Shown here one piece after another: positions 7,071 through 56,362 of a stretch of 64,000 nt of DNA. Numbering within the stretch: the stretch's first letter is position 1; each line of letters starts with the position of its first letter. The stretch comes from Prasinococcaceae sp. CCMP 1430 (lineage: Eukaryota > Plantae > Prasinodermophyta). The notes under the pieces were generated by a model. That model worked only from the letters and a program-made list of their open reading frames with translations. It made no database searches and was not told the DNA's origin. The position numbers and the translations under genes were made by a program. The DNA is taken from positions 49,532 through 113,531 of the forward strand of contig RQSC01001079.1 in NCBI GenBank assembly GCA_013416795.1, read 5' to 3'.

Positions 7071-9290
7071 ATGGCCGCGGCCGGCGCCGCCGCCGCGACG
7101 GGCGCGAGCGCGGACCCCCCCGACGCCGCCAGCATCAAGCGCACGGGCCGCAAGCTCTTCTTCCGCGTTGAGGGCGCGACGTCCGAGGACCCCGAGCACC
7201 CAGCGCGTGCACTTGCCGTCGGCCCGAGCGCCACCTCCGATGGGTGGCGCTGCGCGCGGTTCTGCGCCTTCCCGCAGGCGCTCACGCTGCGCCTCGAGCG
7301 GCCGGGCAGCCACGTGCGCTCCGTGCAGGTGCTCAGCCACGAGGCGCTCATCACACGCAAGCTAGAACTATGGCTGGGGTACCTGCCGCCCGAGTCCGAA
7401 GTGGGACATCGCCCGCGCGACGAGGTCGAGCCGGTGTGGAAGAGGCTCGGCCACGTGGGCTTTGGGGACAACGAGAAGAACGACTTCGGTGCGCGAGAGC
7501 TCAAAAGCGTCGCGCTCGACGAGAAGCGCGTGACGCACGTGAGGCTGGTGCTCGCCCGTTGCCACGTGAACAAGCGCAACATTTACAACCAAGTCGGCCT
7601 CGTCGCCGTCACCGTGCTCGGCGAGCCCGAGGGGGGCGCGTACGGCCCGTCACATGGCATCGGCGCGGCGCCCACGCCATACGAGCTCGAGCTCGAGCTC
7701 AGCATGGACCCGGCCACAGCGGAGGTGGTGCGCGAGCTTCACTCCGCGAAGGTGGCAGCCGTGTCTCGAGAGGACTACGTCGAGGCAAAGCGGCTCAAAG
7801 AGCACATCGACAGGCTGCGACATGTCGGGGTGCGCGTGGCCCAACTTGAGGCCCGGAAACGACACGCCGAGGCGAGAGAGGACTACGACACGTGCAAGGA
7901 GCTCAAGGCGGAGATCGACGTGCTGAGGATGCACGGGCTACAGGCGGCCACGGGAGCGAGAGCGAGAGCAGAAAAGCGGACGCAGCAGGCGGCGCTGGAG
8001 CAGCAGGTGCAACAGGCGTCGCTCGATCAGCTCACGGCACCGATGCCGCCCCCCCAGAGTCAACGCAGCCTCTCGCGACAGCATGCGGTGGCGGCGGCGC
8101 AACAGCCCATGACGCCGCAGTCGGAGGTGGCGCCGCAAACGCCCGTCGCCGAACCATCGCCAGCCTCTGTCCGAGCCGCGGCAACCCCCTCGCCCGTAGC
8201 GGCTCAGACAAGCGCGCCGGCACCGGAGCTACTCCGTGCGTCCCCTCCTGCAAACGAGGCTGCTCCGCTCGGGTTCAACAAGGCAGTGCCCGCGGCGAAT
8301 GCGTACCAGTCGTACGACGACAGGCCTGTCGATGGCGGCGGTAAGACCCACGCGGAGCACATGGAGCTCCTCGAGCAAGAGGAGAGGGAGCGCGTGCAGC
8401 GTGGTGCGGTTCCAAGCATCCTCTCCGCCGGCGAAAAAGAGGCCAGCGGAGACCTGAGCGCCGAGGCGGCCGCGGGCGCGGCGGGTGCCGAGCAGGCCCC
8501 GTCTGAGCCGTCGCAACCCGAGCCCTTGTCTGCGGCCGACGCGAAGGACGCCCGGCGGCTAATTGAGCTCTTCGGTGAGCACACAATTGCATGCGCCTAC
8601 AGCCGCACCTGGTCGCTGCGCGAGGCCGCGCTGGCCAAGGTGGAGGAGGAAATGTCTGGCGCGTGCGAGAGCGACGCCGCCCTCGCATGCCGCTGCACTC
8701 TGCGGCTGCTGGAGAGGTACATGGCCGACAACAACGTCGCCGTGTTCACGGCCGCCCAAGGCGCCCTGCGAGCGTGCTACGACTGCGCGTCCTTCTACGA
8801 GGCAGACGCCAGCGAGCTGGCGGCGGAGACGGAGAACCTGTGCGTCGCGCTGGTGAAGCGCGTCGGCGACGGCAACTCGCGCATCAAGCAGCAGGTGGAG
8901 AAGACGGTGATCTACCTCGCCGGTCACGACGCCTGCGGCACCACACCCCTCGAAAACGCAATCTGCATATCGCAGAGCGCCAGCAAGAAGGCTTCGGCGC
9001 GTGGCACGGTCGGGCGGCTAGACCTGCTGCTCGATCTCGTACCGAAATACTCGGTGTACGACGGCGACTCCGGCGGGGCGCACTTGACGCTATCGCTGGT
9101 GATGAAATTTGCGGTCGCCGCGTTCGACGACTCGAGCAGCGACGTGCGCAACCGCGCGACCAAGGTCGTGCTCGAATGCTACCAGTGCGTCGGCAACGTC
9201 GTGAAGCGGTATCTGAAGAACGTGAAGCCGGCCATACGCGACGTGCTGGAGACCGGCTTCGAGCAAACAGTCGTCGGCGCCGGCGGGTGA
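7071..9290 (+). CDS. CEP104: Centrosomal protein CEP104/FAP256-like (jelly-roll, UVR coiled coils, TOG domain)
   Basis: N-terminus GWRCARFCAFPQALTLRL, LGHVGFGDNEKNDFGARELKSV and NIYNQVGLVAV; K..AV..EDY..AK..K repeats; HEAT/TOG region AYSRTWSLREAAL..SSSDVRNRA. Confidence 0.88.
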   Translation: MAAAGAAAATGASADPPDAASIKRTGRKLFFRVEGATSEDPEHPARALAVGPSATSDGWRCARFCAFPQALTLRLERPGSHVRSVQVLSHEALITRKLELWLGYLPPESEVGHRPRDEVEPVWKRLGHVGFGDNEKNDFGARELKSVALDEKRVTHVRLVLARCHVNKRNIYNQVGLVAVTVLGEPEGGAYGPSHGIGAAPTPYELELELSMDPATAEVVRELHSAKVAAVSREDYVEAKRLKEHIDRLRHVGVRVAQLEARKRHAEAREDYDTCKELKAEIDVLRMHGLQAATGARARAEKRTQQAALEQQVQQASLDQLTAPMPPPQSQRSLSRQHAVAAAQQPMTPQSEVAPQTPVAEPSPASVRAAATPSPVAAQTSAPAPELLRASPPANEAAPLGFNKAVPAANAYQSYDDRPVDGGGKTHAEHMELLEQEERERVQRGAVPSILSAGEKEASGDLSAEAAAGAAGAEQAPSEPSQPEPLSAADAKDARRLIELFGEHTIACAYSRTWSLREAALAKVEEEMSGACESDAALACRCTLRLLERYMADNNVAVFTAAQGALRACYDCASFYEADASELAAETENLCVALVKRVGDGNSRIKQQVEKTVIYLAGHDACGTTPLENAICISQSASKKASARGTVGRLDLLLDLVPKYSVYDGDSGGAHLTLSLVMKFAVAAFDDSSSDVRNRATKVVLECYQCVGNVVKRYLKNVKPAIRDVLETGFEQTVVGAGG

Positions 9291-24138: not shown

Positions 24139-25413
24139 ATGGTGGCTTTTGCAGTCGCGCGCGCACCGCGCCCGCCGGTGGCCCGTCGCTCATCAGGTGC
24201 AGGGCGGGCGCAGCGTGCGTGGCGCACGCCGGCGCGCTTGGCGGGCGGTGGGTCCAGCGGCGGCGGCACTGGCGATCCGCTCGGGGCAGCGCTTGGCGGC
24301 GGGTTGCGGCTCCTGGAGTGGAGCGGCGCAGTGGTGCCGCAGGGCACGGTGGTCACGGGCGTGAAGGGCGCCTGGAGGGCCGCATGGGTCACGTTGATGC
24401 GCGAGCTCGCGCCCCAGGATGCCTCGGGATCGTACGCGCGGCCGGAGGCGTCGTTCACCGGCGAAATCGAGGGGGACAGCGGCGCGCGCTTCGGCGCCGG
24501 GGGGCGGTACGTGCTCTACGTCGGGAACGCCTGTCCGTGGTGTCACCGCGTGGTGCTCGCTGCTGCTCTGCGCGGAATCCAGGAGCCCTCGCTGCGTCTC
24601 GTGCGTGCGGTCGACGATCCAGAGCGCGCGTCGCGCGGCGGCTGGGTGTTCGACGCGCCCGAGCCGCTCTTCGGCTCGAGCGACCTTCGTCAGGTGTACG
24701 ACGAACTGTCACCCGGCGGCTACTATGGGAGGTGCACCGCGCCACTGCTCGTGGACGTCACCAGCCGCCGCGCGGTCTCAAACGACAGCGCCGCCATCGT
24801 GCGCTCGCTGCGCCACCTCCCGGGGGAGTCGGGCGTCGATCTCTACCCGAGCCACCTGCGCAGCGAGATCGACGCGTGGTGCGTGACGATCGGCAAAAAA
24901 GTCAACGCCGCCGTGTATCGCTGCGGCTTCGCCACGACGCAGGCGGGCCACGACGCGGCCTCGAAGGTGCTCTACGAAGGTCTCGACGCGGTTGAGGCCC
25001 AGCTTGCGAAGACGCGCTTCGTCGCCGGAAACACAGTCACCGAGGCGGACGTCTTCTTGCTGCCCACCATCCTCCGCTACGACCTGGCGTACGCCGGTCT
25101 CTTCAAGTGCTCAGGGCGCAACATGTCAAGCATGCCGAACATCAGGCACTGGCTGCGCGACATGTGGAGTCTGCCGGGGGTGGCACAGACCTTCGACGCG
25201 GACGCCGCGAGGGCGTCTTACTACGGCCTCTTTCCTCTTAACCCCTCCGGCATTGTGCCGGCAGGGCCCACCAGGCAGGAGCTCGAGGCCGAGTGGTCGC
25301 GCCCGTTTTCGAGCCGCGAGCTTCTCGCTGGGGGCGAGCCAAGGCTCTGGTCGGAGGAGCAGGGCGACGTGGACGCGGGCGCGGGCGCGGAGGGCGTCGC
25401 GACCAAGGCCTGA
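24139..25413 (+). CDS. Glutathionyl-hydroquinone reductase (Xi-class GST, YqjG/ECM4 family) with N-terminal extension
   Basis: GRYVLYVGNACPWCHR, GRCTAPLLVD, VSNDSAAIVR, VNAAVYRCGFATTQAG, EADVFLLPTILRYD, LNPSGIVPAGP. Confidence 0.88.
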   Translation: MVAFAVARAPRPPVARRSSGAGRAQRAWRTPARLAGGGSSGGGTGDPLGAALGGGLRLLEWSGAVVPQGTVVTGVKGAWRAAWVTLMRELAPQDASGSYARPEASFTGEIEGDSGARFGAGGRYVLYVGNACPWCHRVVLAAALRGIQEPSLRLVRAVDDPERASRGGWVFDAPEPLFGSSDLRQVYDELSPGGYYGRCTAPLLVDVTSRRAVSNDSAAIVRSLRHLPGESGVDLYPSHLRSEIDAWCVTIGKKVNAAVYRCGFATTQAGHDAASKVLYEGLDAVEAQLAKTRFVAGNTVTEADVFLLPTILRYDLAYAGLFKCSGRNMSSMPNIRHWLRDMWSLPGVAQTFDADAARASYYGLFPLNPSGIVPAGPTRQELEAEWSRPFSSRELLAGGEPRLWSEEQGDVDAGAGAEGVATKA

Positions 25414-31504: not shown

Positions 31505-32252
31505 NNNNNNNNNNNNNNNNNNNNNNNNNNNNNNNNNNNNNNNNNNNNNNNNNNNNNNNNNNNNNNNNNNNNNNNNNNNNNNNNNNNNNNNNNNNNNNNN
31601 NNNNNNNNNNNNNNNNNNNNNNNNNNNNNNNNNNNNNNNNNNNNNNNNNNNNNNNNNNNNNNNNNNNNNNNNNNNNNNNNNNNNNNNNNNNNNNNNNNNN
31701 NNNNNNNNNNNNNNNNNNNNNNNNNNNNNNNNNNNNNNNNNNNNNNNNNNNNNNNNNNNNNNNNNNNNNNNNNNNNNNNNNNNNNNNNNNNNNNNNNNNN
31801 NNNNNNNNNNNNNNNNNNNNNNNNNNNNNNNNNNNNNNNNNNNNNNNNNNNNNNNNNNNNNNNNNNNNNNNNNNNNNNNNNNNNNNNNNNNNNNNNNNNN
31901 NNNNNNNNNNNNNNNNNNNNNNNNNNNNNNNNNNNNNNNNNNNNNNNNNNNNNNNNNNNNNNNNNNNNNNNNNNNNNNNNNNNNNNNNNNNNNNNNNNNN
32001 NNNNNNNNNNNNNNNNNNNNNNNNNNNNNNNNNNNNNNNNNNNNNNNNNNNNNNNNNNNNNNNNNNNNNNNNNNNNNNNNNNNNNNNNNNNNNNNNNNNN
32101 NNNNNNNNNNNNNNNNNNNNNNNNNNNNNNNNNNNNNNNNNNNNNNNNNNNNNNNNNNNNNNNNNNNNNNNNNNNNNNNNNNNNNNNNNNNNNNNNNNNN
32201 NNNNNNNNNNNNNNNNNNNNNNNNNNNNNNNNNNNNNNNNNNNNNNNNNNNN
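31505..32252. other. Assembly gap (other gaps: 37534-37789, 52786-53055, 55921-56362; single-N joins 12123, 16140, 18730, 30548, 35149)
   Basis: Runs of n seen directly. Confidence 1.
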
Positions 32253-37533: not shown

Positions 37534-37789
37534 NNNNNNNNNNNNNNNNNNNNNNNNNNNNNNNNNNNNNNNNNNNNNNNNNNNNNNNNNNNNNNNNNNN
37601 NNNNNNNNNNNNNNNNNNNNNNNNNNNNNNNNNNNNNNNNNNNNNNNNNNNNNNNNNNNNNNNNNNNNNNNNNNNNNNNNNNNNNNNNNNNNNNNNNNNN
37701 NNNNNNNNNNNNNNNNNNNNNNNNNNNNNNNNNNNNNNNNNNNNNNNNNNNNNNNNNNNNNNNNNNNNNNNNNNNNNNNNNNNNNNNNN

Positions 37790-42993: not shown

Positions 42994-43094
42994 GTTTTGT
43001 TTTTTTGCGGCGGGTGCCATCAAACACCATCTTCGGTGACAGCTTTTGTTTTTTTTGCGGCGGGTGCCATCAAACACCATCTTCGGTGACAGCT
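42994..43094. repeat. Tandem duplication, 50-bp period, two copies
   Basis: tttt(g)ttttttgcggcgggtgccatcaaacaccatcttcggtgacagct occurs twice (GCGGCGGG at 43007 and 43057). A separate 11-bp repeat agcccacgtcg x2 lies at 42723-42749. Confidence 0.9.
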
Positions 43095-43159
43095 GGCGGG
43101 GGCGGCGTCGACGCCACTGGGCGCACGCCCGGCGCTGCTCGGCGCCCTCGCCCCGTGCC

Positions 43160-45469
43160 ATGGCGGGGGGGCGCAGGTGGGGCGGCGGAGGAGTGGGCGC
43201 GCTCGCGGGCACGTGCGCGGCAGATGGCGCGGGGTGGGCCGGAGCGGGCGGCGGCGCCGTGCCGCTGCAGCGCCCTCCGGACATGGTGGGGACGGCGGGC
43301 TCAGGACGCGGCGCCGCCGACCCCGACGAGCACGCTGTCTTCGTCTCCGTCGCAGATGCGCCTACGTCACGCGTGGTCGTGTACACCGACCGCGCCGAGG
43401 TGACGCGCGCAGTGACGTCCGTGCGCGTCCCGGCGGGCCGCACGCGGGTGACGCTGTGGAACGTGTCGGCGCTGCTTGTGCACGAGAGCGCGCGTGTCGA
43501 CGGCAGCGCGCTGTCGAGCTCGAGCGGAGGACACGGCGCGCCTTCGGTGGCAGTGCTCGAGGTCAGCGAATCGCGACGCATGGGCGTGCCCGCGGGCGCG
43601 GCGCCGCCGCTGCGGCAGGCGCTCGAGCGCGCCCAGGCAGCGCTCGCCACTGCCGAGGCAGCGGTGGCGGACGCGGCCGAGCGGCTGAAACGCGCGCACA
43701 GACGCAGTGAAATGGCAGACACAGCGGTGGAGAGCGCGCTGGGTCGCAGCAATGACGGCGTTGGCGGCAGCAGCGCCTCGCCGCTCACGCGCCTCACCTC
43801 GGAGTTCGCAAGTATCAACGAGCTCCTCGACTGGGCGGACGCGCAGTTCGACGCCACGATGGTCGCAGTCGGCGAGCGCCGCGCATCGCTCGAGCTCGCG
43901 ATGCGCACGCGCGACGCGCGGAAATGCGATGTGGACGCCGCGCTCGCGGCACTCGACGAGCCCGCGGCGCAGAGCGCGCAGCCGGGCGTGAAGCCCTTGC
44001 GAAGGAGCAAGGGGCCGGCCTCATCCATCAGCGCAATGGTGGAGACATCTGGGCCCGCCACGCTCTCGCTGGAGTTCACGTACATGGTGTCGGGTGCGCA
44101 GTGGGCGCCCACCTACGACGTCCGCAGCAGTGCCGACCCGCTCGCTGGCGGCGCCGGCCAGGCCATCACTGTCGGTTACGTCGCTTCTGTGACGCAAAGC
44201 ACCGGAGAGGACTGGGCATCGGGCGAGCTCACGCTGAGCACTGCACGGCCCAATGTCGGTGCATCGCCGCCTCACCTGAGGCGCAGCACGGTGGGTCTGC
44301 ACTCAGTGCGCGCCTTTGAGGCTTACGGCGCGGCAGGAGACTCGTTCGCCGCCCAGGCAGAGCCGATGCAGCGCACAAGTCGCGCCCGGATGGTCAAGCG
44401 AGGGTCGGCTGAGTTGGCCATGGCAGCAATGGACAACAGCGCCGATGGTGCAGGCTACGAAGACGCTGAGGAGGACGAGGCGGTGCTCTTTGCAGAGGCG
44501 GTGTCATTCACAAGCGCTGTTGTGGCCGAGAGTGGCACCAGCACTGAGTACGTGGTGGCCGACGCGGCCGCGGTACCCTGCGATGGCCAGCCGCATCGCA
44601 TCACGATTGCCACCATGGAGCTCGCGTCGAGAATGAGCTACATTGCCGCGCCCAGGGCTGCTGCCAAGGTGCGTGCGCCATACCTTGCAGCGCCGATGCC
44701 CTGCGGCGGCCCTCGAGGCCACCTCCCGTGTCGTCTCCTATCCCTGCGCGAGTTGCTGACGCGCGTCCACGCGACCCCGCTCTCGTTACTCCTCGTTCCC
44801 AATCGCCTGCATCCAGGCCTACCTCACTGTCAACACCACCAACGACTCGGAGTTCGTCATGCTACCTGGTATCGCCCGCGTCTTCCAGGGAAACCGCTTT
44901 GTCGCCTCGACGCATCTGCCCCTCACGCCCGCTGGCGGCAAGCTCATTGTGCCTTTCGGCACGGACGACAGCGTGACCGTCACGGCGGAGCCGGAAAAGG
45001 TGATCGGCGACTCCAAGGGCTTCCTCATCAACGAACGGACGACCTCCAAGCAGCGCCACGCGATGGGCGTGACCAACAACAAGAGGGTGGCCGTGGAAGT
45101 GCGCGTTGAGGACGTGGTGCCAGACTCAAGCCACGAGGACGTAAAGGCGCGTAGCCGCGACATGCGCGGCGCTCTGGCGCTCTGGCGCGCGCGCGAGCGC
45201 GCACGCGCGAGCGCACGCACGCGCGAGGGCGCAGCTTCGAGCACCCCGAGTGCGCGTGCTGACGCCAGACGTCGCGCCGCTCGTCCACGCAGGTCTCAGT
45301 GGTGGAACACACGTCAGAAGCGTGCGCCGGCTGCACGCTGGCGTTCGAACACGAATCCAAGAAGCAGGATGCCGCGTGGAGGCTCGTGCTACCGCCGGGC
45401 GCCAAGCAGCAGCTCACGCTGCTATACGAGGTCTCCTGGCCGAAGGGCAAACAGGTCTTTGGCATCTGA
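43160..45469 (+). CDS. DUF4140/DUF4139 protein (F37C4.5/MuiA-like); introns 44669-44816 and 45141-45292
   Basis: VVVYTDRAEVTR (DUF4140); YMVSGAQWAPTYDVR, QSTGEDW..LTLSTARP, AYL..N...MLPG..VF..FV (DUF4139). Confidence 0.85.
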
Positions 45470-45737
45470 GGACGGAAGCAAGCGAGATGCAGAGCGGGCA
45501 CGCTGTAATAATAGACAAAATGGCCATTAGTGGCTCTCTCTGGAAGTCCTACCCGCAGTGGGCGTGCGAGAGCAGGCCGGAATCCAAGCGCAGCGTCGGA
45601 GAGTGACCTATCCTCCCGACCTCAGCTCAACTACTGCAACGCCCGCTGCCGTGCAAGCCTGCGGCCGCCGAGGGGCGAGCTGCGCCGTGTGCGCGCTCTC
45701 TGGCCCTGGCCGGCAGTGCGCCCGCGCGGCTTCCAGT

Positions 45738-46801
45738 TTATTTCTTCTTGTTCGGTTGCAGGCCTCCAAACCATCCCGTCTTCTTCGACTCCTTGGCTGG
45801 CTCCGCCTTGGCAGCTGTGAATTTCTGTGTGCCACCGCTCTTGAAGAGAGAGAAGCCGCCGGCGGCCTTCTCCACGGGTTTGGCCTCCTTCGCGGGTGCG
45901 GCCTTCTTGCCGACGCCGAACGAGAACGCGGGCTTCTTGGCCGCCTGGGCAGGCGCAGCCTTCTTCGCGGTCGCGGCCTTCTTCGCGGGCGCGGCCTTCT
46001 TGCCGACGCCGAACGAGAACGCGGGCTTTTTGGCCGCCTGGGCAGGCGCGGCCTTCTTCGCGGGCGCGGCCTTCTTGCCGACGCCGAACGAGAAGGCGGG
46101 CTTCTTGGCCACCTGCGCGGGTGCGGCCTTCTTCGCTGGCGCGGCCTTCTTCTCCGTGACCTTCTTCGTCCCTAGGCCGAACGAGAACGCGGGCTTCTTT
46201 GCCGCCTGCGCGGGCGCGGCCTTCTTCTCCGTGACCTTCTTTGTCCCCATGCCGAACGAGAAGGCGGGCTTCTTGGTCGCCTGCGCTGGCGCGGCCTTCT
46301 TCGCTGGCGCGGCCTTCTTCACGAGCTTCTTTGCTGGCGCAGGTGCCTTCGCAGCAGGAGCAGGCGCAGCCTCCTTCGTGGCAGGCGCCAGGCTGCCAAA
46401 AATGCCGCCAAAGAAGCCGCCGACGGGCGCCTTCTTAGGGGCGACAGGAGCGGCCGTCGCTGCTGGCGGGGCCTGCACGGGGGCAGCGACGGCCTTCTTG
46501 GCGGCGGGCTTCTTCGCCTTCGCCGAGCCCCGGTTGGCGGGCGCGGCGGGCGGCGGGCGGCTGAACGTCTTCATCTGCTTCACCTCTGTGGCGGCAATCG
46601 CCGCGAGTCGCTCGCGCTGGAGCTCTTCCTTGGAGGGCTCCTTCTTGGCAACGGGGGCGGGCTCGGGCTTCGCCGCGGGCTCTGGCGCGGCCTCAACCAC
46701 CTCGTCCTCGGCGACGGCCGGCTCGCCGCCGGCCGCGCGCGCCGGACGCACGCGCCGCGCGCCGCGGCGGCGGGCGCGCCCATGGACGCCATCGACGCCA
46801 T
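45738..46801 (-). CDS. Basic Lys/Ala/Pro-rich disordered repeat protein with 5x KKPAFSFG and a transit-peptide-like N-terminus; apparent 2-nt frameshift at 46734-46741
   Basis: Body frame open 45738-46733 with codon-level repeats. Leader MASMASMGAPAAAARGACVRRA is in a neighbouring frame. Confidence 0.7.
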
Positions 46802-47275
46802 CGCAGCAATCGACGCCTTCCCCGCCAACACTTCCCGAACCCCGGGCGCGCCCCTGCGCACCCTCTGCCACCCTCCCCTCCCCCACCCCCCACCCCCCAC
46901 GCCCGGCTGCGCCCGCAGCAGGGAACGACCCAAATCTGCACAAAAATCCATAATCTGCAGTTAGTGAAATTTCGAACCACCCTTCCGCGAACGCACTTCT
47001 CATTCCACATCAAACAACACTCACCCGACCCGATCACTAGCTTCGCGGAATAAATTCACCCAAATTTCGCGCGTTCGAATTAGTTGGATCGGGCGCATAT
47101 CCGCCGGCGCCCGCACGGGAAATCCGCCGCTGCCCGCAGCAGAGGGGGGGATCAGTTAGGGGTTTATTTAGGGTCTGATCAGATTTCAGGGTCCAAGTTT
47201 GGTTTTGGAGGACGTGCGATGGCCAGCTGTTCCCCGGAGGGGGCGGAGCCAGCCAGCGCCGCGCTCGCGCGCGCG

Positions 47276-47281
47276 GTGTGT

Positions 47282-47324
<43 letters not shown>
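47276..47324. repeat. (GT)n microsatellite (others: (GA)n 2321-2339, (CCGT)n 31057-31086, (GCCT)n 63542-63562)
   Basis: Seen directly. Confidence 0.9.
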
Positions 47325-47328
<4 letters not shown>

Positions 47329-47500
47329 TGTGGTGGTGGTGGCGGGGGTTGCCGTGCTGTGGCTGTTGGTGTGGGTGGGCGGGTTCGGGTGGGTGTGGGT
47401 GTGGGTGGAGGGGTGGAGGGCGCGGGGAAGGGCGCGAGTGGTCACACGGCGAGGCCTGACAGGGGCGGGGCGGGGCCGCCCGCGTCCCGGCGCCCCGGCG

Positions 47501-49345
47501 ATGGAGGCGGTCCGGCGGCGCTGCGGCCCGACGGCGGCGGCGTTCGCTTTGTGCGTGCTCGTTGGCGCACTAGCCTTCCTGCCGCGCAGGGTGCGTTCCG
47601 ACACTGGCGTCGGGGACCGGGCGTATCGAGCCCAACCGACGCGCGCCTCCGCCTCCGCCGCGCGGCGGGTGCCGTTCTACGACGAGCTCGAGCGGCGCGG
47701 CGGGGAAGCCAGCGTGCGCGTCTACGCACAGCCGCTAGATTCGGCGCGGTTGGGGCGGCATGTGGACGCCCCACTCGAGCAAACCAGGCTGTTGCCGGAG
47801 CTATTTCTGCTCGGTGGCGTCAAGTGCGCCTCCACATTCATGTTCGAGTGCATCAACTCGGGCATCTTTGACGTCAACTCGGCGTGCGGCCCCGACGTGA
47901 GCAAGTGGAAGGACTGTGTGCCGAAAGATGGGAAGCGTTACATCGTGACGAGCCTCAAACAGGTACGCGCGCTAGAGAGGGCATGGGCGCGCGCGCGCCC
48001 GATCGCGATCGCACCGCGGCGCCGGTCTCGCTGACCTGCGCGCTCATTCATGCGAACGACCCCGGCGCCAACCCGCGCGTGCGCCCGCTCGCTCGCTGGC
48101 GCGCCACGTGCGCGCGTGCGCGTGTCCGTGGGCCCATCAGGCCAAGGAGCCTTTTGGCTACACAGACATGCAGTTTGCCCAGGGCGATATCCGCCGCTAC
48201 GCTGGCCCCGACGTGCCGTTGGAGCTCATGCGGTACCACGACCCGGGAAGCTTCATGCGCGAGGGGGAATTCCTGGACAAGCAGTGCAAGCCGAAAGCTG
48301 GCGCCGTGCCCGGTGGATGCCTCGCAGGGCTGTGTCGCCTGTCGGAGCCTTCCGGAGGCCCGCTCAGCCCCAGAGCCGACAACATGACTGTGCTCAAGCG
48401 CTGGACGCACCCTGGGTGCACTGTACGAATGGCCGGCCCACAAGGCAAGAAGGCGCCGAGTGTGCAACTGATGCATCACTACCCTTGGCGAGAGGACCTG
48501 AGCGAGGCCGCGGTGGCTGCCGAGGGGACGCCCAACTACCTAATGTCGAAGCACGTGGCCGAGCGCGTGGCCAAGTACAAAGCTGGCCGCGAGAGCAACC
48601 TGCGATTCATCGTGCTTCTGCGCGACCCGGTCGATCGCGCGTACTCAGAGTACTCCATGTTCCGCACATGGGGTTGGGAGAAGGAACCCAACGTGACGGC
48701 CGCGCTGCTCAAGAGGCGCGACGCGCTGGCGACGTGCACGGGCGGGCTCGTCTTCGGGAATCGGCAGAGCGCCTTCGACGACATTTCCATTGAGGAGCTT
48801 CGAAGCATTCACGAGAGGTGCTTCGACGGCAAGGCCACCAGATATTTCGAGAACGGGCTGTACTACATTGGTCTCAAGGTGTGGATGTCCTACTTCGACC
48901 CCTCGCAGTTTCTGGTCATGACCTTCGACGAGGTCACCAACGCGGAGCCCGAGGTGTGTCTGCTCGCGCGCGCACGCGCACCCCGCGCCGTGCTTACACG
49001 AGCGCGGCGCGCGTAGGTTCGCCAGATGCCCCTTTCGGTCGGCACTGCGCGCCCGCGCTGACCACGCGCGCCTCGCGCGTGCCCGATTACGTTCCACAGG
49101 AGCTGTTGGGACGCATCGCAGACTTCGCCAATCTGCACCTGCCGGACAAGACGACCGCGGCCTCGCAAGTGTACTGGGGGCGTGCAATGAACAAGTGCCA
49201 AATTCGCAAGGGCCGGAAAATCCCACAGCACCAGACCACGGGGCACATCACCGACTCTGACGAGGCAATGCTGCGCGAGCTCTTCAAGCCGTGGAACGAC
49301 AGGCTTGAGCGCCTGCTGCCGAACGTGCCGATCAACTGGGCGTAG
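47501..49345 (+). CDS. Golgi-type PAPS-dependent sulfotransferase; introns 47963-48140 and 48954-49099
   Basis: N-terminal TM anchor; 5'-PSB loop FLLGGVKCAST, KEP, 3'-PB motif IVLLRDPVDRAYSEY, GLYYIGLKVW..YF..QFLV, LRELFKPWNDRL. Confidence 0.8.
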
Positions 49346-52700: not shown

Positions 52701-53055
52701 GCCGCGCGCTGCGGCCGCTTCCCAACTGCCGGCGCGCGGCGATGCGCCGCAGCGGCACGCTCCTGCGGCGGCTCGCGGCGGCGGCNNNNNNNNNNNNNNN
52801 NNNNNNNNNNNNNNNNNNNNNNNNNNNNNNNNNNNNNNNNNNNNNNNNNNNNNNNNNNNNNNNNNNNNNNNNNNNNNNNNNNNNNNNNNNNNNNNNNNNN
52901 NNNNNNNNNNNNNNNNNNNNNNNNNNNNNNNNNNNNNNNNNNNNNNNNNNNNNNNNNNNNNNNNNNNNNNNNNNNNNNNNNNNNNNNNNNNNNNNNNNNN
53001 NNNNNNNNNNNNNNNNNNNNNNNNNNNNNNNNNNNNNNNNNNNNNNNNNNNNNNN

Positions 53056-53318
53056 CAAGCTGGTCGGCATCGCGATCGTGCTCGGCCTGGCCGTGCTCGC
53101 ATATATTTTCATTCAGAACATGGTGGGGAAGGGTCGATAGATGCTCGCGGATAAGGACCGCATCTTCACCAATGTCTACGGTTTCCAGCCGTGGAACCTG
53201 CCGGCTGCCCAGAAGCGCGGCGATTGGGACAAGACCAAGGATCTGATGTCGATCGGCCAGGACGCCATCATCGACAAGATCAAGGCGTCGGGCCTGCGCG
53301 GCCGCGGCGGCGCGGGCT
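53056..53318 (+). other. nuoF: Bacterial-type nuo operon fragment: end of a small membrane ORF plus the 5' 59 codons of nuoF (truncated)
   Basis: ...LAYIFIQNMVGKGR TAG is immediately followed by ATG (53141) [35 protein letters not shown]. Purine-rich SD-like GGGGAAGGG at 53125-53133. No targeting peptide. Similarity stops abruptly at about 53318. Confidence 0.85.
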
Positions 53319-55842: not shown

Positions 55843-56362
55843 GTGCCGTGCGTGTGAGGCGCGCACGTCGCCGCCACGCGTCGCCGCTGGGCGCAGCGGC
55901 GCCAGCGCCCGCGCGCAAGCNNNNNNNNNNNNNNNNNNNNNNNNNNNNNNNNNNNNNNNNNNNNNNNNNNNNNNNNNNNNNNNNNNNNNNNNNNNNNNNN
56001 NNNNNNNNNNNNNNNNNNNNNNNNNNNNNNNNNNNNNNNNNNNNNNNNNNNNNNNNNNNNNNNNNNNNNNNNNNNNNNNNNNNNNNNNNNNNNNNNNNNN
56101 NNNNNNNNNNNNNNNNNNNNNNNNNNNNNNNNNNNNNNNNNNNNNNNNNNNNNNNNNNNNNNNNNNNNNNNNNNNNNNNNNNNNNNNNNNNNNNNNNNNN
56201 NNNNNNNNNNNNNNNNNNNNNNNNNNNNNNNNNNNNNNNNNNNNNNNNNNNNNNNNNNNNNNNNNNNNNNNNNNNNNNNNNNNNNNNNNNNNNNNNNNNN
56301 NNNNNNNNNNNNNNNNNNNNNNNNNNNNNNNNNNNNNNNNNNNNNNNNNNNNNNNNNNNNNN

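Follow-up and report, generated by a model that had tools for sequence, protein, structure and literature searches.

Two kinds of described protein come closest to the one encoded by the locus reported here. The first comprises the green-lineage Rubisco linkers EPYC1, CsLinker and SUPA1, which have about 300-370 residues (291 in SUPA1) and five to six tandem repeats, are largely disordered and strongly basic, and occur in narrow lineages. Known green linkers are each limited to a single order and lack homologues elsewhere, and the stickers of EPYC1, CsLinker and SUPA1 are positively charged helices, either pre-formed or folding on binding. Each known pyrenoid linker is lineage-specific and represents a new way of condensing Rubisco, and what is learnt from such linkers feeds directly into attempts at building pyrenoids in crops. 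The criteria behind the discovery of CsLinker and SUPA1 were generic, namely at least three repeats, disorder, a pI above 8 and a repeat spacing of 20-120 residues (PMC11570498; bioRxiv 2026.07.16.738900). The second kind comprises the FxFG nucleoporins (yeast Nsp1, Nup1, Nup2 and the Nup50 family), in which the core motif KPAFSFG lies in a disordered chain that is rich in Lys and free of Arg.

The Prasinodermophyta are the earliest-diverging phylum of green plants. For the Prasinococcales, in which cytoplasm and a mitochondrion penetrate a large pyrenoid sheathed in starch (PMC4860620), our literature search found no described pyrenoid linker. Here we analyse a gene, hereafter the FSFG gene, from a 64,000-nucleotide stretch of contig RQSC01001079.1 (the window, to which all positions refer). 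Its protein resembles EPYC1, CsLinker and SUPA1 in length, number of tandem repeats, disorder, basic character and narrow lineage, and shares with the FxFG nucleoporins the core KPAFSFG within a disordered, Lys-rich, Arg-free chain.

Origin of the DNA and the coding body of the FSFG gene

A GST-like ORF at 24139-25410 (+) of the window is 100% identical over 401 aa to the EukProt entry PRCOL_00003736 of Prasinoderma coloniale. Judged by this identity, the source of the DNA is Prasinoderma coloniale or a near-identical strain. The match also overturns a stramenopile origin (Aureococcus), under which the missing signal peptide would have spoken against import into the plastid. Up to residue 401, the plain ORF of the GST-like gene (424 aa; UniRef, MMETSP) agrees with PRCOL_00003736 as modelled (421 aa); the two diverge only beyond that point, where a 3' intron seems to be disputed. 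This gene too begins with a transit-peptide-like leader of similar Ala/Arg composition to the one described below.

On the minus strand, 45738-46746 forms an open frame for an Ala/Lys/Pro-rich protein with a pI of about 10.8 (10.76). This main coding body, assigned from the ORF, third-position GC and RNA contigs, contains an acidic patch, one helix and a polycationic, disordered Ala/Lys/Pro-rich chain, and closes with a stop codon at 45738-45740. Third-position GC in the body frame is 0.87-1.0 from about 46740 down to 45870. Since the coding signal of this frame persists for 170 nt on the upstream side of its first Met (46574), the translation start must lie further up. An antisense ORF of 401 aa was discarded, as codon-position GC argued against it.

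Public contigs from RNA libraries were aligned to 45200-47500, including those of a culture transcriptome (X1), a marine metatranscriptome (X2) and a related organism (X3). Together these contigs span 45530-46663 of the FSFG gene and are intron-free. The gene is real, and its body is transcribed both in cultures and at sea. Its contig depth in the culture transcriptome is of about the same order as that of an ordinary neighbour gene, although such depth cannot rank genes. The 3' untranslated region (45530-45737, minus strand) was delimited by an X1 RNA contig covering 45530-45927 and abuts the 3' end of a convergent DUF4139 gene.

Just upstream of the putative start codon, a G-rich run on the coding strand (GGGGGTGGGGGGTGGGGGAGGGGAGGG, 46860-46905), which is conserved in the Tara metagenome scaffold L002, may represent a G-quadruplex in the 5' UTR or promoter. 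A 5'-UTR intron running from gtgagt at 47022 to ctaactgcag at 46955 was also considered and rejected, as neither its donor nor its branch signal is kept in the near-identical L002 and no RNA contig extends over it.

A putative transit peptide and a frame break in the window

The sole suitably placed ATG for the FSFG gene (46801-46799, context gcgATGG) opens a MASMASMG leader whose start, MASMASMGAPAAAARGAC, occupies 46747-46801 on the minus strand, yet in the window this ATG lies in a different frame from the body. The break falls within 46744-46762. An independent DNA contig from the same organism (X13, record 13, 1284 nt) is 43 bases longer than the window at 46747-46762, with the same single-copy depth there as in its flanks. 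The extra 43 bases consist of 27 new letters and a re-used stretch of 16 bases. When the gene was rebuilt from X13, MASMASMGAPAAAARGAC-ARAGGLTARRARRVRP-ARAAGGEPAVAEDE fell in a single frame and reached the ...GGEPAVAEDE of the body; about 16 of the 43 inserted bases are approximate (aligned with up to five mismatches), so that five to six leader residues are uncertain.

A sequence-only reading of this DNA had joined leader and body by removing a single CG. The joining itself is borne out in independent DNA, by X13 throughout and by L002 over three bases, and X13 has the same +1 frame effect; the removal of one CG is not, as X13 shows 43 additional bases instead. The confirmation of the frame by reads or RNA that the same reading had called for was obtained in part, with the DNA contig X13 in frame and with RNA contigs that cover the body, none of which covers the leader or 5' end. 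The scaffold L002, reached via the neighbouring sulfotransferase ORF, is identical to the window in its first 18 leader codons and ends three bases past the break, where it reads cgc like X13 as opposed to tcc in the window. All other assemblies break at this spot, and the window, itself a draft sequence, is interrupted by eight single Ns or N runs. The frame break in the window probably reflects an assembly collapse or a strain deletion in a GC-rich near-repeat. An intron was rejected as the cause, as between leader and body there is no GT...AG pair with a usable length.

The first 40 residues of the leader are Ala/Arg-rich and include about eight Arg but no Lys and no Asp or Glu, whereas the FSFG repeat region contains 24% Lys and no Arg. 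In this genome, with a GC content of about 67% and mutation pressure towards Arg codons, the change from an Arg-only leader to Lys-only repeats marks a sharp module boundary. In composition, an acid-free Ala/Arg leader set off in this way from a Lys-only repeat region agrees with a targeting peptide that is cleaved off. GC-rich sequence can also yield N-termini rich in Ala and Arg that have no targeting role. Transit peptides in the green lineage are simple N-terminal sequences, and in an algal host of this lineage that has a large pyrenoid the leader is plausible as such a peptide. No hydrophobic signal peptide was found in the protein.

Stickers, spacers and predicted structure

The peptide features that the sequence-only reading had listed, including five copies of KKPAFSFG and several aromatic patches, were all found where it had placed them on the minus strand. 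Five exact KKPAFSFG[M/L/V]G motifs are evenly spaced at 25-31 residues. The first (46251-46274) is followed by MGTKK, the second (46176-46199) by LGTKK and the third (46083-46106), fourth (46008-46031) and fifth (45915-45938) by VGKK, the residue at FSFG-x being hydrophobic (M/L/V) in all of them. Three aromatic-glycine patches accompany the stickers on the same strand, namely VGGFFGGIFGSL (46389-46424), which contains GGFFGGIFG, GGFSLFKSGG (45831-45860) and the C-terminal TGWFGGL (45759-45779), which holds the only Trp of the protein and is followed by QPNKKK and the stop. Besides the five FSFG motifs, the protein has three other FG dipeptides.

At the DNA level, the five sticker-spacer units are coded by a tandem array (45882-46320, minus strand), in which Tandem Repeats Finder detected periods of 75 and 93 nt (also 168 nt) with 83-95% identity. 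As the stickers stem from a DNA tandem array, the repeats are not a matter of chance. Within the gene the sticker residues are invariant, and the codons flanking them differ synonymously. Between related, near-identical strains we found five synonymous and four non-synonymous variants, all in spacers; the number of KKAAPA spacer units also differs between such strains, and the stickers and the C-terminal tail are 100% conserved. Correspondingly, the fifth sticker, GGFSLFKSGG and TGWFGGL are identical in the environmental contigs L016 and L017.

With its leader, the precursor would have about 368 residues, of which 29% are Ala, 18% Lys and 12% Pro, and a net charge near +58. A single-sequence AlphaFold2 model of a 333-aa query had a mean pLDDT of 48.7, with 204 of the 333 residues below 50. 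The only secondary structure predicted was a helix of about KEELQRERLAAIAATEVKQ (46575-46631, minus strand; model residues 37-55, pLDDT about 70), a candidate anchoring or dimerising element. A Pfam scan at E up to 1 gave nothing above threshold and only a sub-threshold SHIPPO repeat. The pI, the low pLDDT and the five repeats agree with the earlier description of a basic, disordered, multivalent sticker-spacer protein.

The precursor would accordingly be laid out in three modules. The first would be a leader of about 40 residues, Ala/Arg-rich and free of acidic residues and Lys, which resembles a green-lineage organellar transit peptide. The second would consist of a short acidic patch and one amphipathic helix. 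The third would be a disordered polycation of ~270 residues, with Lys as its only basic residue and rich in Ala and Pro, bearing five stickers of the form KK-PAFSFG-(M/L/V)-G-(K/T)K and three Gly-flanked aromatic patches.

Homologue searches

A word-index homology search gave no match at E up to 1e-3 among the 8000 proteins sharing most words, and the ESM Atlas gave no usable match. PDB sequence searches with the whole protein and with the repeat region returned nothing meaningful, and scans of JGI metagenomes with the protein and with a 29-nt leader pattern found none. Four candidate products of the locus were looked up exactly in public protein sets, where none is on record.

Further, an HMMER pass over 1.84 billion representative proteins returned 16 weak matches (best E-value 1.7e-10) and no self-match. 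All 16 are restricted to the repeat zone (residues 145-317) and fall into two classes, fungal-type FxFG nucleoporins and invertebrate allatostatin-type precursors with FGLGK(R/K) units. Four of the nucleoporin matches (P0001, P0006, P0007 and P0009) carry NUP50 and/or RanBP1 Pfam domains, and the others are Nup1-like. From these comparisons it appears that no homologue exists and that the matches share the motif alone.

The environmental and culture contigs that bear the gene (L002, L016 and L017), which were found via neighbouring proteins, all end inside it. Because the products cut short on such contigs are absent from the protein collection, the 'orphan' status of the protein is partly an assembly artefact. 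Short-read assemblies all fail at the GC-rich leader and near-identical repeats of the gene, and the reference is frameshifted there; for these reasons the gene is missing from public protein sets, which makes it a blind spot of protein catalogues.

In a more distant environmental relative (Tara L006:1-480), the order of the sulfotransferase and PDZ-protease genes is kept relative to 46800-48100 of the window, and a different gene (MLSLVHAARHFRSEDK...) stands upstream at the position of the FSFG gene. Judged from this arrangement, the FSFG gene may be absent or relocated outside the closest strains.

A possible Rubisco linker of the plastid

We tentatively favour, as possible rather than probable, the reading that the FSFG protein is targeted to the plastid and serves there as a polycationic sticker-spacer scaffold, Rubisco being its preferred partner. 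Plastid targeting with some partner, whichever it is, has close to an even chance. The data themselves establish the structure of the gene, the transcription of its body, the layout of the repeats, the disorder and charge of the protein, its lack of homologues and the identity of the host; which start codon is used, import into an organelle, the identity of the partner and condensation are inferred. Once imported, most probably by the chloroplast, the protein would make a weak contact through each sticker with an acidic multivalent partner, to which the sticker would offer a hydrophobic F-x-F-x-hydrophobic face clamped by lysine pairs. The flexible cationic spacers would let one chain bridge several partners and so lead to condensation. 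With the Rubisco holoenzyme of the large pyrenoid as this partner, the one that we favour, the protein would be a lineage-specific analogue of EPYC1, CsLinker and SUPA1.

By the generic criteria that led to CsLinker and SUPA1, the FSFG protein has five repeats spaced by 25-31 residues, a pI of 10.76 and a mean pLDDT of 48.7, and its length is similar to that of SUPA1. The earlier proposal of a Rubisco linker is consistent with these values and with a green-lineage, pyrenoid-bearing host, but the stickers are not predicted to be helical. In contrast to the positively charged helices of EPYC1, CsLinker and SUPA1, the sticker of the FSFG protein is a Pro/Gly-containing F-x-F-G-hydrophobic, strand-like element. 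AlphaFold2 on the single sequence predicted no helix in the repeats, which is a weak negative as the motifs of SUPA1 fold only on binding. The spacing of the stickers is also about half that in known linkers (about 40-60 residues), and the Chlamydomonas Rubisco-binding motif [D/N]W[R/K]xx[L/I/V/A] is absent from the FSFG protein.

A more specific proposal is that the pyrenoid matrix of Prasinodermophyta is held together by plastid-imported, non-helical FSFG stickers with the same chemistry as the permeability barrier of the nuclear pore; we regard this as quite unlikely. Were this the case, the green lineage would have a fourth, mechanistically distinct Rubisco linker, and a multivalent phase of FG type would for the first time be known from within an organelle. 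The gene is a concrete, clonable candidate for the missing pyrenoid assembly factor of Prasinodermophyta.

Alternative functions of the FSFG protein

The FSFG protein could instead be an FxFG-type nucleoporin or a soluble FG protein of nuclear transport, with its FSFG motifs binding karyopherins or NTF2, its helix or basic chain tethering it to the pore or basket, and its leader having no targeting role. The resemblance to Nsp1 that had been noticed from the sequence holds at the level of the motif. Indeed, KPAFSFG is the Nsp1 repeat, every paper containing this string concerns Nsp1 or the nuclear pore, and the best matches among the 1.84 billion proteins belong to the Nup2/Nup50 family, with NUP50 and RanBP1 domains, or are Nup1-like. 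The FSFG spacing of 25-31 residues is inside the range of the nucleoporin matches (median 14-30.5), and charge carried by Lys only is typical of FxFG spacers, R being near 0 in these matches. FG domains, moreover, evolve fast and are often unrecognisable across lineages.

However, the similarity is limited to the motif zone, residues 145-317, and the spacers around the motifs differ. The FG regions of eight nucleoporin matches are polyampholytes with a net charge per residue of -0.03 to +0.005, 23-37% S/T/N/Q and as much Lys as Asp and Glu together, whereas that of the FSFG protein has a net charge per residue of +0.22, 2% acidic residues, 31% Ala, 12% S/T/N/Q and no Arg. In terms of class membership, FxFG motifs in a disordered region are present (five FSFG, pLDDT 48.7) but neutral, mixed-charge spacers are not, since the spacers of the FSFG protein are purely cationic and Ala-rich and those of nucleoporins are charge-neutral and rich in S/T/N/Q. 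The protein has five FxFG motifs as against 8-28 in the nucleoporin matches, the residue at FSFG-x is always M/L/V, unlike in those matches, and the Pfam scan at E up to 1 found no NUP50, RanBD, Nsp1_C or other anchor domain. A coiled-coil anchor is likewise missing, and an organelle-type leader is present at the N-terminus. On balance, we consider a role at the nuclear pore unlikely; were the FSFG protein nuclear after all, it would stand out among FxFG proteins as unusually cationic and as a striking case of exact convergence on the motif of yeast Nsp1.

Another possibility is a polycation in the manner of histone H1 tails that binds and compacts nucleic acid, either in the nucleolus or on chromatin or else, given a functional leader, in a plastid or mitochondrial nucleoid or ribosome, with the Phe motifs mediating self-association. 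The C-terminal tails of H1, kinetoplast-associated proteins and bacterial AKP-repeat DNA binders have a matching Ala/Lys/Pro composition. The FSFG protein shares with H1 tails and AKP-repeat binders this composition (29% Ala, 18% Lys and 12% Pro, with a net charge of about +58) and runs of the KKAAPA type (KKAAPAKKAAPA) in a disordered chain. It differs from them in that it has no globular domain and carries aromatic stickers, whose regular spacing and invariance are not H1-tail-like. Moreover, neither a linker-histone globular domain nor a DNA-binding domain was found by the Pfam scan at E up to 1, and no homologue among the 1.84 billion proteins searched with HMMER backs such a function, which we rate as rather unlikely.

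The eight basic-plus-aromatic patches of the protein, together with a leader compatible with plastid import, would also suit a TSP9- or MARCKS-like plastid protein that sits on anionic membranes by means of such basic-aromatic clusters and that tethers or stacks thylakoids or links the membranes entering the pyrenoid. The GGxFGG(I/L) patches resemble the tail of TSP9, a small basic plastid protein. The likeness to the TSP9 tail that had been drawn earlier did not carry through to the family model, however, as TSP9 (PF11493) gave no match in the Pfam scan at E up to 1, and TSP9 has no FSFG repeats. In addition, no amphipathic helix is predicted in the aromatic patches. Membrane binding of this kind appears improbable, although none of these observations separates it from the binding of Rubisco.

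It is highly improbable that the locus is a frameshifted pseudogene in the sequenced strain, or that translation passes over the leader and yields a protein of 278 aa from the internal Met at 46574. The window is itself frameshifted and the exact product of the locus is absent from public protein sets, but X13, and L002 over three bases, are free of the frameshift, the window is a draft at a place where every other assembly breaks, and the coding signal reaches 170 nt upstream of the internal Met of a body that is transcribed in cultures and at sea. Finally, a neuropeptide precursor was rejected: allatostatin-A-type precursors, among them P0004 (Allatostatin by Pfam), share x-F-x-F-G-L-G-K-K/R units with dibasic sites, but these are animal secretory proteins with signal peptides and acidic spacers, whereas the FSFG protein has no signal peptide and comes from an alga, and the match is a coincidence of motif.

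Neighbouring genes and the rest of the window

The convergent neighbour of the FSFG gene, at 43046-45525 (+), encodes DUF4140 and DUF4139 domains. In a spliced RNA contig of this neighbour, ...VPDSSHEDVK is directly continued at position 45291, and the intron accordingly ends at 45290. The 3' end of the neighbour is at about 45525, with a TGTAA signal at 45503-45507, and lies within five bases of the 3' end of the RNA contig of the FSFG gene. On the other side, a long (GT)n/(CA)n microsatellite occupies 47250-47420, in the divergent intergenic region or the 5' region of the next gene, where reads are cut and which no contig of four runs spans.

Farther along, an N run (52786-53055) is immediately followed by a putative alphaproteobacterial nuo fragment (53056-53318), and this stretch looks like a scaffolding join or a contaminant insertion rather than a biological fusion. 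Further N runs are located at 31505-32252, 37534-37789 and 55921-56362, along with several single Ns. At 7071-9290 (+), the window contains an intact CEP104 gene, which codes for a 739-aa protein of the ciliary tip and centriole with CEP104_N and TOG domains; the order to which the host alga belongs is described as being without flagella (PMC4860620).
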